This document shows, in pieces, positions 40,076 to 62,670 of a stretch of DNA of 64,000 nucleotides (positions are counted from its first letter, which is position 1; every line of letters starts with the position of its first letter). The stretch comes from Kudoa neothunni. Lineage: Eukaryota; Animalia; Cnidaria. The translations under genes and the position numbers were made by a program. Under the pieces are notes generated by a model that searched no databases, was not told the origin of the DNA, and was given only the letters and a program-made list of their open reading frames with translations. The stretch spans positions 9,160,882-9,224,881 of the forward strand of contig OZ199840.1 of assembly GCA_964304625.1 (NCBI GenBank). The letters run 5' to 3'.

Positions 40076-41017
40076 ATGGCTTTATTGATCGTGTGTATTT
40101 TGGAAATTATATGTATTTTATAATTGATTGGTAATAATTAAATTAAATTTAGACTTGGTTAAAATTTTCAGTGCAATAAAAATTTCCGGAAATAATTTAA
40201 CACATGAAAAAGTTGTTGGTATTTTCTTATTAGAACAATAATCAGTTTTAGTTATGGCTTGTTAATTTTGCTCGAGACCAAATGTTTGAATCGTTAGAAA
40301 CCTTACAAGATTATTACGAACACACCCAAGACAATATGGTAACAGATCTAATAAAATAAATTTTCTATAAAATATGAATTTCCAAGAATCGCCTCATTGC
40401 AAAAGCTAAATCAGATCTTACATGGTTTATCAACGAATATTATAAACCAAATAAACTGTGTTCAGATCATGCAACATGTGATCAGGAAATAAGTGGGATT
40501 TTCTATTTAATTTTATTAATATATATATATATATCTATATAAAAAAATTGTATAAATAGTTAAAAGTTTTAAAGAACCTATCACTTGCGTGCCATGCACA
40601 GTAACGTATTAGATTTTATTAATTATACGATCATGTTGATAGACTACTGTTCTATTTAAAATATGAGTCTGAAGCAGGCGCTGTAAGATATATATTATAT
40701 CATACTTTTTTAACAATTGATAGAGAGATGAAGACAATATTTATAATGAATCAATGGACAAATGTTATGAAGATTGTTTTTTGCAACAGTGAATCATCAA
40801 CAATAGGTATTACTTTGATTTTTCATTATTTGTAATTAAATGTAATAAACAATTTTAAATTAAAAAAATCCATATTTAAACGCCTTTTTTAGGTGGAAAC
40901 GGAAATTGCACTGAATACCGACAGAAAAGAATTTCTAGGACTAACCTTGATGTGTGGAATTCATTAAAAAATGTAACAATAACAACAATTACATTTCACG
41001 CCTCTCCAATAAAATAA
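40076..41017 (+). pseudogene. Secreted Cys-rich family paralog D (disrupted or mis-sequenced)
   Basis: Exons 3-5 have the same lengths and phases as the other paralogs (PNKLCSDHATC, EPITCVPC); downstream exons need two homopolymer indels and one damaged acceptor. Confidence 0.65.
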
Positions 41018-41641
41018 TTACAGACTTTTGAAATCATATTACTGGGATCAATATATTATTATTTTTGTTTTAAAATGTCGTTGATTTTTAATCTTCCGAG
41101 CGCATCAAAATCGGCAACACATTTGGTGCTTTTGGGGCCAAATTGACCCCAGGTTTTATTTCATCCTTAAATGCAAGAAAAAATTATGTAATCGCTGGTT
41201 AAAAGTATATAAAATTGAATAATTCATCAAAAAACGACTACATTTAGATTGATATTCAATTTTTTAACAAGTTAAATGTATCCTCTCTAGCTTAATTTAC
41301 AAGTAGGAAACTAAATTATAACTTATAACTTACTTATAATTTATAACCAATAGGATTACAATTAAATTTCCTAATAATATTGTGTACGAAGTTAATCTAA
41401 TTGATGAAAATGAAAAATTTTATCATATGTTCTTATCAAAAAAATATTATTTAATTCTATGAAGCACTATCATTTCAAGATAATTTTATCAGAGATCGTT
41501 GTTTATGCAACCATTATTCGACATATTGCATCGATTAAAAAAAACAACAATATTCAGTTAAATTAGTATATATTTAGATAAATAAAGAAATATTTGTCGT
41601 TGCGCTTATTTTTAATTCTATAAGTTTATGTTCATTTCTAA

Positions 41642-42967
41642 CTTTCTAACGAATTAGGGGTGTATTACACCCCACACCACGTTTAATGTGGGAATAAAAT
41701 TGTACAACCTTCTCATAGAAAATTGAAATTTACGTTATTCTCGTATATTTATTAAACGTACAACATATCAAAAATTCGAATAAAATATAAGTTCAAGTCT
41801 CGCACAAAAAAAAATTCCATCCTTTAACCTTCCCTGTACTAACTTCCGAAACAAAACGCATGTGTCTGACTGGGGTATTTCTTGACCCTAGACGAAATAT
41901 GGTTTAAACTTATTCAATTTATCCCAATTTTATACATTGTAAACAATACATCTAGCTTAACAATTCCATAGCAAATATACAATGGATTATTATTTCTGGA
42001 GTTATTTACGTGAATTTATTTATCAGCAACCTTATTAGTATAATGTTAAACTAAAAGCACTAAGGTATATTATACATTCCTTAAAAAATCAATAATGTTG
42101 ATTTTCATCATCAAATAGGATGAATAAACATTTACGCAGTAAACTCCAAATACATATCTTTGTGTGTAGACATTCCCTCGGTAATAGTCAGTGATATAAT
42201 AAAATTTAGGATTAGTGTTATTATCAAGCGATTCGATATTCTATGAAACAAAAAAGCATATAATATTTCATTATGGTATTTATTTTCAGATAAATGTAAT
42301 AAATGGTCGCGTGCGGGGTTCAAAACCTATTATCCATAACTTAAAGGCGGTGGCGCCATACCGCTGTGTTGTTGATTGCGTATTAGTTAATTTTGGTTAT
42401 AACTCTTATATCATCAATCAAAGAGTTTTTCTAAATCTTTAAATTGTTGTTAGGGCTCATATCAAACTCAAGGAAAAATTAAAAATTTATAACAAAGTTT
42501 TGTGCTCCAATATGTGAAAGCAAAAACGAAATCAAATGAAATAATTAATTGGATTTATTATACGCCAATTTAGGTTATGTAGAAAAATGGGATTATTTGA
42601 GCAAGGGGCTAGTACTAGTTAGACCATTCTGGTGGGTGAATTAAGATGGGTATTTTCAATGAATTTTTGATGATATCCATTCCCTTAGTGATGAGTTAGA
42701 TAATAGCTTGTTTTTATACATTATTTAAGGCAACAAAGACTTATCATTCGCTGAAAATAATCCACGATGGTTGTGCCGAATCATTCCGACCCAGATTAAG
42801 TTTGGTAATAGATGTAAATATACTCCAAATTCTATCGATAGAATCTACAACAAATTCTCAAATAAATTCAGAATTATTTTTCGAGTAAATTTGAGCAAAA
42901 AAAAGCCTGGGGTAATTTTCACCCCAAACCCCCAAAAGAGGATGGAATGTTTCGCTAGCCTAGAGGG
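41642..42967. mobile_element. Non-autonomous piggyBac, same family as 62837-63738 in inverted orientation
   Basis: 41642-41720 and ~42560-42967 are reverse-complement homologs of the 62837-63738 element; CTAA on both flanks; another piggyBac end nested at 41828. Confidence 0.8.
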
Positions 42968-61300: not shown

Positions 61301-61694
61301 CTCTCACGATAATAAAAAAATATTTTAACAATTTAACTATTAATCTAATCAATAAACGAAAAAATACATCAATGGTATTTAAAACTTACTCAATACTCAA
61401 TATCTAAATATCTAAGTATTAATACAATTAAATCAAAGTATACTAAATTTAAAATCAGTATATATATAATTTTAAACAAATAATCTAAGAAAATTAATAT
61501 AATAACAGCTTTTATTTACTTTAACCGACTTTATTTTAACATGTCATACTCATTTTTTCAGACTTTTTTTATTGATAACATTCTACTATCTTTAATACAA
61601 AATTATTGTTTTTTAAGAAAAGAAAAGATAAAATATTGCTATATAAGCAGTAGATGATCGTGTATCGTCCCTAACAAAAGAATATCCGCCGAAA

Positions 61695-62670
61695 ATGATG
61701 AATATTATTCTGGTTACTTTATGTAAATAAAAAGTGTGTTCAATATTAAATATATATTTTTAGTCTTCACGACAATAATCAGTACCTCTGATGTATACGA
61801 AAAATATGAATATTTTTATAATTTTATTCGAATTAGTTTACATTATCCTTTTCAGCGAAAAGGGATCTGTTTCATGCACTATACCTGCTTCAGCGTAACG
61901 AATCATTTAATACTGGAATAAGAGTATTTATTTTGTTATAAAAAAATTTAAATAACTCTATAGTCTGAACTGTTTGAAAACGCATTATCTGATGTGAAGC
62001 ATTTCGTGAATAATTCAACGTTTATTACAGATCATTCTGATATGTTTGTCCAAACATACGATTTATTACGTAAGGGGTTAAACTAAAAAAATTTTCATCG
62101 ATTAGTATGTTTAGTTCAACATTTTAAACATCCTGAAAAATGTTTTGCTTGTGCGGTAAATTTTCTCCAAATAAACGCTTAAATACTTTACTCAATAGGA
62201 GATTTTAAGGAAAGAATGTGAACTAATGCAGGCAAGTGCATCAACCCGACAAAATTCGGTCAGACATCACTCCAATGAAAACGTTATTCTATGATGTGTG
62301 CACTCGTTTACTTTTCATAGGTTCAGCCTAATTGTAACACCACATCATTATCCGATTGCTTTGAAGCTAATTTTTGTCATGAATTGATAGGTGATAAAAT
62401 ACAATAAATTTCCGTTATAATAATATTCATAAACTTAAATTAAATATTTATTTAATCATTTTTATTAGATTTGCATCCGGAACCGCTTGTGAGGAATCCC
62501 TTTTCAGGTAATAATTCAACATTTTAATGAAAATATTTTCTAAATCGTGAATTTTAGGCATATGTCAAGTGGGATTTGAATGCAGACCTAATCGTATCCT
62601 TCAATCATATTTGTCAAGAATTCCAGGATTTGGGATAGGTGATTTACTATCTCGACGATCCTGGTCATAA
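61695..62670 (+). CDS. Secreted Cys-rich family paralog C (9 exons, 8 Cys)
   Basis: MMNIILVTLFFTTIISTSD...TDHSDMFVQT...PEKCFACAEILRKEC...NCNTTSLSDCFEANFC...ICQVGFECRPN...SWS*. Confidence 0.85.

Follow-up and report, generated by a model that had tools for sequence, protein, structure and literature searches.

A spliced, probably secreted family of about fifty cysteine-rich proteins in the myxozoan Kudoa neothunni

What is encoded by a row of very short exons on one strand of a Kudoa neothunni chromosome, and what might the products do? We address this question for a window of 64,000 nucleotides (C3:9160882-9224881; the window is the whole stretch of DNA that was analysed), in which a sequence-only reading had proposed five spliced genes for small, secreted, cysteine-rich proteins. 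The assembly of K. neothunni, derived from yellowfin-tuna data, comprises 40.2 Mb in three chromosomes and a circular mitochondrial contig with an N50 of 12.0 Mb; genome-wide, the guanine-cytosine (GC) content is 30.4%, the mean intron 49 bp and the mean exon 112 bp (PMC12239612). Our searches covered 40.26 Mb in four contigs (17.15, 12.04 and 11.05 Mb and a small one), and the window has a GC content of about 28%. The published annotation was built from protein hints only, since too few RNA reads mapped to Kudoa (PMC12239612), and because of this reliance on protein hints an orphan family of tiny exons was overlooked. We show here that the five loci are maintained coding genes, and that they belong to a real secreted gene family we regard as very likely. 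The best overall explanation, which we hold with moderate confidence, is a spliced family of about 50 members whose secreted products would form a compact, disulfide-held domain that binds at the host interface.

Gene models were obtained by reading the DNA directly and by aligning the three downstream loci (C, D and E). Coordinates are positions in the window:

40076-41017, plus strand: gene A, 8 exons, 192 amino acids (aa); exons 40076-40112, 40153-40211, 40252-40338, 40387-40492, 40560-40605, 40643-40682, 40728-40806, 40893-41017
43254-44269, plus strand: gene B, 8 exons, 219 aa, full scaffold of eight cysteines, weak leader; exons 43254-43317, 43356-43414, 43453-43545, 43588-43693, 43741-43781, 43828-43920, 43963-44044, 44148-44269
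47582-48571, plus strand: gene C, 9 exons, 197 aa, eight-cysteine scaffold and a terminal C-x5-C; exons 47582-47609, 47652-47680, 47727-47813, 47854-47959, 48005-48045, 48089-48172, 48211-48280, 48370-48405, 48459-48571
52925-53892, plus strand: gene D, 9 exons, 198 aa, eight-cysteine scaffold and a terminal C-x5-C; exons 52925-52952, 52994-53022, 53067-53153, 53195-53300, 53345-53385, 53429-53512, 53550-53619, 53690-53728, 53780-53892
61695-62670, plus strand: gene E, 9 exons, 198 aa, intact, with Cys1 and Cys2 both lost; exons 61695-61722, 61764-61792, 61837-61923, 61964-62069, 62115-62155, 62199-62282, 62321-62390, 62469-62507, 62558-62670

The five same-strand loci are real, with start codons at 40076, 43254, 47582, 52925 and 61695 and a last stop that ends at 62670, and in the gene models their exons splice into open frames of 192-219 aa. 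It had also been said that the list of open reading frames misses them, and this list indeed shows only fragments between 39.5 and 63.5 kb. All 38 introns of genes A-E are of the GT-AG type and span 37-103 nt. Exon phases and most exon lengths are shared, as proposed: C, D and E have eight intron positions and their phases (1,0,0,1,0,0,1,1) in common, and their exon lengths (28/29/87/106/41/84/70/36-39/113 nt) show a sole difference of 3 nt. A and B have the phases in common together with a 59-nt exon 2, an exon 3 of 87 or 93 nt and a 106-nt exon 4, and exon 5 of B is 41 nt long, as in C, D and E. The frame of gene A stays open only if the exon-5 donor is placed 5 nt 3' of the family-standard one and the acceptor is in phase 2. 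Gene A is a divergent copy, and since it needs this non-standard donor and is devoid of Cys5-7 and of the small exon 8, it may be decaying.

Could such frames have stayed open by chance? Protein identity is 50-57% among C, D and E and 16-26% between each of these and A or B. At the nucleotide level the divergence amounts to 25-30%, yet the frames are open across eight or nine exons. When the roughly 150 observed substitutions were placed randomly on gene D, a stop-free frame survived in only 3.5-4.5 of 10,000 simulations. The ratio of nonsynonymous to synonymous substitution rates (dN/dS) among C, D and E is 0.41-0.43, with the lowest values around the cysteines and values near 1 in the loop and the linker. 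Where exons differ in length, they do so by multiples of 3, and the lengths of the introns vary without such constraint. In genes A-E the GC content is 0.36-0.39 in exons against 0.19-0.21 in introns, close to the values published for K. neothunni (PMC12239612). Thus, the improbability of the frames under neutrality, a dN/dS of about 0.42 and the GC contrast between exons and introns establish that genes A-E are maintained.

Where would the products of these genes act? Four clear hydrophobic leaders had been claimed, and we find strong ones in A, C, D and E (maximal 9-residue Kyte-Doolittle average within the first 33 residues 2.7-3.4) and a weak one in B (1.4). A later membrane span was not found in any of the five proteins, as no later 19-residue window exceeded 1.35. 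The leader of C, D and E terminates in I-x-[AT], followed by S and then by F-[AT]-L-S, which fits the -3/-1 rule of signal peptidase, and N-x-S/T sites occur at two aligned positions common to these three proteins. Outside the window genes, 13 of 15 members tested have a two-exon, Met-initiated leader in the right phase, strongly hydrophobic in 10, in an enumeration that selects the most hydrophobic solution and is biased in this respect. Taken together, the two-exon hydrophobic leaders, the conserved N-x-S/T sites and the lack of a later membrane span make secretion probable, in line with the sequence-only reading, and the proteins probably enter the secretory pathway.

The cysteines are nearly invariant throughout the family; genes A-E encode 7-11 of them per protein. 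Motifs of the family surround a core of eight conserved cysteines and read F-I-N-x-[YF]-P...L-C-x5-C, C-x-P-C-x7-C and C-x7-C-x5-C. Of genes A-E, only B, C and D have all positions of the proposed common scaffold, C-x5-C-x13-C-x2-C-x7-C-(loop)-C-x7-C-x5-C, in which the loop comprises 25-35 residues in the family; E is devoid of Cys1-2 and A of Cys5-7, so that the scaffold stands for three of the five genes. The C-x2-C element is a nearly invariant C-[MVSL]-P-C in type I members, and C, D and E carry C-F-[APV]-C. An extra terminal exon with C-P-x-G-x-E-C (C-x5-C), which the earlier reading had located in A, B and C, occurs in C (47582), D (52925) and E (61695), whereas A (40076) and B (43254) lack it. 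In gene E, Cys1 and Cys2 are replaced together, and a gene of the main array described below (C3:5160959) shows the same co-loss with the C-x2-C pair kept. The joint loss of both residues with retention of C-x2-C suggests that Cys1 and Cys2 are bonded locally to each other, and in combination with the near invariance of the cysteines it points to intramolecular disulfides. The first 48 mature residues contain no conserved proline or glycine, and their hydrophobic periodicity peaks at 100 degrees, a peak matched by 59 of 5000 shuffles, which is weak evidence that the N-terminal half forms an amphipathic alpha-helix. A separate observation concerns an additional cysteine in exon 3 (S-L-C), found at the same position in B (43453-43545), in the gene next to the window end (gene F, see below; 1082-1168 nt past the window end) and in a few others, among them one C1 gene and an array gene at about C3:5074613. 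It renders the cysteine count odd and could allow covalent dimers or a fifth disulfide.

How large is the family? The initial exon-4 profile, made from the five genes, found 39 places in the genome. After examination of 240 kb the profile was rebuilt from 29 members, and it then identified 54 loci at an expectation value (E) of at most 0.01, distributed as follows:

C3 5.049-5.167 Mb, all on the minus strand: 19 exon-4 matches
C3 5.316-5.469 Mb, all on the plus strand: 15 exon-4 matches
Window cluster, plus strand: 6 loci
C1, mixed strands: 10 loci, five of them at 2.956-2.994 Mb
C2, mixed strands: 4 loci

Exon-4 matches are the sole basis for the array on the right (C3 5.32-5.47 Mb), for the C1 cluster and for most singletons. 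The description as a five-member family hence has to be given up, as the genome-wide copy-number check yields 54 loci and the window holds part of a six-gene cluster that is a satellite of arrays with about 34 genes. Both arrays lie about 4 Mb from the window cluster on the same chromosome and are transcribed away from a 150-kb gap between them; this mirror-image arrangement looks like an inverted duplication of the whole array. The sixth gene of the cluster, F, is located 917-1908 nt past the window end; it is intact, has 8 exons, encodes 207 aa and is 54% identical to B. Because F has the same eight exons, it confirms the model of gene B, including its cysteine-free last exon. Among the modelled members, exon 4 measures 106 nt in 29 of 29 and exon 5 measures 41 nt in 27 of 27, exon 3 has 87 nt in 22, and about 20 members of the arrays have the exon with C-x7-C-x5-C. 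A frameshift in exon 4 affects at least one array copy, at about C3 5121300. Within the 300 kb examined there is no intron-less copy of the family.

Did the window cluster arise by recent local expansion? A maximum-likelihood tree was calculated from exons 3-5 (78 columns; 26 members, after omission of three that lacked a clean exon 3 or 5). It groups C, D and E with the array gene C3:5160959 (support 100/99), places B and F together (99/92) adjoining C3:5143401 (86/75), and joins A with C3:5146113, 5117195 and 5113916 (87/82). Three lineages of the family are thus represented among the six local genes. All three have their closest relatives among neighbours in the left array, and a fresh local expansion does not account for the cluster. 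According to the tree, the cluster and part of the main array are related by an old segmental duplication, in which the cluster is either the copy or the source, and local duplication came afterwards. The copies are old, with synonymous divergence (dS) of 0.7-0.9 and amino-acid identities of 16-57%; together with the three lineages, this contradicts the view that the family is expanding here.

Genes D and E share an upstream region that is more similar than the genes themselves:

52036-52924, plus strand: block upstream of gene D, 86-97% identical to the block upstream of gene E at 60803-61694

Over about 900 nt of upstream sequence and exon 1 the two loci are 86-97% identical, compared with 60-88% in the gene bodies. 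The block is not a dispersed repeat, as it matches only D, E and, weakly, C. Identity between D and E is 0.72 at four-fold sites and 0.79 in introns, which have thus diverged about as much as the exons. For this reason positive selection was rejected as the cause of the pattern, and the identity of the upstream blocks is better explained by recent homogenisation. Recent gene conversion or unequal exchange in the 5' part of D and E is the most likely explanation of this homogeneity; alternatively, the block may be a conserved regulatory region.

Searches for relatives point to a lineage-restricted family. Pfam gave only chance matches for ten exon translations (Lustrin_cystein, E=0.087; UFL1, E=0.19), and a PDB sequence search with profiles of exons 4 and 7 returned no meaningful match. 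A word search with the stop-to-stop frames around exon 4, which sees only proteins of similar length, yielded 42 candidates and none at E of at most 1. In the ESM Atlas, the open frame that runs through exon 6, intron and exon 7 of gene F scored at noise level (0.82 at best). When the exon-4 profile was run with HMMER against 1.84 billion proteins, three matches were obtained and one of them (P0002) is genuine. The other two, a repeat protein (P0001) and a protein with an EsV-1-7-like Y-P-D-E-E-G-K-P-x-x-L-C repeat (P0003), were discarded as short-motif artefacts. The 35 aa of P0002 correspond to a genuine exon 4, encoded on an ENA metagenome scaffold, L033 (1978 nt, GC 26%), for which no DNA match was found in the K. 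neothunni genome. The scaffold carries exon 3 (87 nt), exon 4 (106 nt), exon 5 (41 nt, C-L-P-C), exon 6 (x6-C) and exon 7 (C-x7-C-x5-C), separated by introns of 38-57 nt; upstream, by eye only, one can recognise an exon that starts with Met, encodes a hydrophobic stretch and has a phase-1 donor. Since the exon architecture is the same and the DNA does not match the genome studied here, the family is present in at least one other organism, presumably a Kudoa-like myxozoan. The earlier statement that the family is not recognised holds for Pfam, PDB and the 1.84 billion proteins searched with HMMER, save for this one metagenome fragment, and the family appears lineage-restricted, with no detectable relatives among the known protein families.

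Based on these data we propose the following scenario. Eight or nine very short exons, joined across introns of about 40 nt, encode a protein of 190-220 aa, and its leader, split over two exons, would direct it into the secretory pathway. The core of eight cysteines would staple a compact domain by intramolecular disulfides, and this domain would act outside the parasite cell. The C/D/E subfamily adds two predicted N-glycosylation sites and the C-P-x-G-x-E-C exon. In this scenario the window cluster itself descends from the main arrays at C3 5.05-5.47 Mb through old duplications, both segmental and tandem. A diversified set of extracellular binding proteins at the interface between the parasite and the host muscle fibre is the most likely role, though still a tentative assignment. 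A more specific possibility, which we consider somewhat unlikely, is that the fold is new, disulfide-rich and restricted to Kudoa-like myxozoans, with about 50 secreted variants, encoded mostly in the two mirror-image arrays, that would bind or mask molecules of the host muscle cell.

Other explanations have to be weighed against host-interface binding. Spore structures of myxozoans are stabilised by disulfides, and secreted, cysteine-rich proteins could accordingly belong to the spore, as structural or matrix proteins of its shell valves, polar-capsule wall or sporoplasm coat that are made in sporogenesis and cross-linked by disulfides. The ninth, unpaired exon-3 cysteine of B and F would permit intermolecular links of this kind. 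However, about 50 paralogues at 16-57% identity would be unusual for structural proteins, low-complexity or repeat regions and the CX3C repeat pattern of the minicollagen or NOWA type are absent, and the gain and loss of cysteines in pairs suggests intramolecular bonds. Hence, we regard a spore role as unlikely. Less likely again is that the proteins are highly diverged members of the saposin-like group (SAPLIP/swaposin), i.e. helical lipid binders that scavenge host lipid or lyse host membranes. SAPLIP proteins and swaposins are likewise small, secreted and disulfide-stapled, contain C-x2-C and C-x5-C and are often expanded in parasites, and the Kudoa proteins are probably helical as well, at least as judged from the N-terminal half; the order of C-x5-C before C-x2-C is that of circularly permuted saposins. 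The Kudoa family differs in number and spacing of the cysteines and has no hidden Markov model match: the arrangement C-x2-C-x7-C...C-x7-C-x5-C fits neither the saposin pattern C-x2-C-x27-C-x10-C-x24-C-x5-C nor the swapped order of C-x2-C...C-x(9-11)-C...C-x5-C. No exon matched SapB_1 (PF05184) or SapB_2 (PF03489) at E of at most 10, and six-frame genome scans with both models gave two weak matches each, none at a family locus, with the reservation that exon fragmentation lowers the sensitivity of either test. Moreover, the joint loss of Cys1 and Cys2 in E and C3:5160959 with C-x2-C kept argues against the cross-linking to C-x2-C expected in swaposins and, as indirect evidence, against the disulfides C1-C6, C2-C5 and C3-C4 that hold the saposin bundle of four to five helices.

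Two further readings appear very improbable. The C-x-P-C element might be redox-active and the proteins secreted factors similar to thiol-disulfide oxidoreductases, given that the nearly invariant C-[MVSL]-P-C of type I members resembles the active sites of thioredoxin and glutaredoxin. The replacement by C-F-[APV]-C in C, D and E speaks against this, six more conserved cysteines point to a structural role, and no thioredoxin-family match was found in Pfam on the exons, in a scan for which exon 5, with its 13 aa, is not long enough. The sole such row in the PDB search, a DsbF chain with E=1.2 over 12 residues, is a chance match. Equally remote is the view that the loci are unexpressed relics of an old duplicated array that decays as pseudogenes. 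The non-standard donor and the three lost cysteines of A and the frameshifted exon 4 of the array copy at C3 5121300 would agree with such decay, but open frames through 8-9 exons at the observed divergence, the low dN/dS and exon lengths that are invariant in 29 members and in a second organism argue for genes under constraint.

Several points weigh against a secreted family at the host interface. The Kudoa RNA reads of the genome study were too few to lend transcript support (PMC12239612). The leaders were assessed by hydropathy alone, with the bias mentioned above for the 15 other members, and the leader of gene B is poor, while gene A may be a decaying copy. All external searches were run exon by exon, which makes them insensitive for relatives. 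Finally, dN/dS is below 1 overall and approaches 1 only in loops, so that the signature of positive selection expected of an arms race is missing.

With host-interface binding as the preferred reading, a comparison with known systems is instructive. Small secreted cysteine-rich effectors of fungi, oomycetes and nematodes constitute an operational class and not a homologous family. Its members have a signal peptide, fewer than 300 aa and about 5% cysteine, are lineage-restricted and fast-evolving, occur in tandem arrays and are missed by homology-guided annotation. The Kudoa proteins have a predicted leader and no transmembrane span, are small, count as cysteine-rich at a threshold of 4% (7-11 cysteines in 192-219 aa) and are lineage-restricted; they too occur in tandem arrays, evolve fast and escape homology-guided annotation. 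In contrast to this class, the parasite here is a cnidarian in an animal host, and the gene copies are of old origin, with moderate purifying selection acting on them. An effector or toxin activity, as suggested by the sequence-only reading, is hypothetical. For the myxozoan Sphaerospora molnari, Giardia-type variant-specific surface proteins (VSP-like) have been described (bioRxiv 10.64898/2026.02.11.705288). Like the Kudoa proteins, these are cysteine-rich, multi-copy and equipped with a signal peptide, and a role at the host interface has been proposed for them (bioRxiv 10.64898/2026.02.11.705288). The Kudoa family is not VSP-like, with one CXXC per protein, a length of about 200 aa and no membrane span.

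The surroundings of the genes had been described as rich in transposons, and this applies in part:

54318-56105, between D and E: dispersed repeat of about 1.8 kb, copies 75-78% identical on all three chromosomes
57071-58127, between D and E: dispersed repeat of about 1.05 kb, at least 35 copies genome-wide with 76-86% identity
18283-19865 and 21846-22397, minus strand: broken piggyBac-type transposase frames (DDE_Tnp_1_7, E 3e-42 to 3e-14)
36462-36749 and 22378-22773, minus strand: open frames, similar transposase remnants by eye only
35979-36431, minus strand: open frame with no Pfam match, similar transposase remnant by eye only
29703-30020, plus strand: match to Pfam Ras (E=4e-28), an exon from a small GTPase of the Ran/Ras type
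9067-10148: tandem repeat, 16-nt unit in 67 copies
16803-17003: tandem repeat, 32-nt unit in 6 copies
25486-26030: AAT-type microsatellite
33953-34649: tandem repeat, 48-nt unit in 15 copies

The two dispersed repeats between D and E and the piggyBac remnants 20 kb upstream are in line with the description; the spacer between B and C is unique sequence and is not. The GTPase exon is the sole clearly conserved housekeeping piece seen in the window, and the 16-nt repeat yields false 350-aa open frames in three reading frames. Elsewhere on C3, in the interval 5200001-5210000 (about 900-1600, plus strand), consecutive short open frames contain a repeated C-N-Y-T-S-H-R-x-C-R-S-S-I-R-C; this stretch may be another cysteine-repeat gene, unrelated to the secreted family described here.

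Kudoa species spoil the muscle of tuna and other fish and some cause food poisoning, and how they persist in muscle fibres without provoking a response is barely understood. A family of about 50 members supplies candidates for proteins of the host interface or of the spore, for antigens and for diagnostic markers. Annotation from protein hints is blind to orphan genes with exons of 28-113 nt, and the real gene count of the "reduced" myxozoan genomes is underestimated. If the proteins do represent a new fold and a repertoire of about 50 host-binding variants, this would be the first time that a candidate effector repertoire is described for a histozoic myxozoan.

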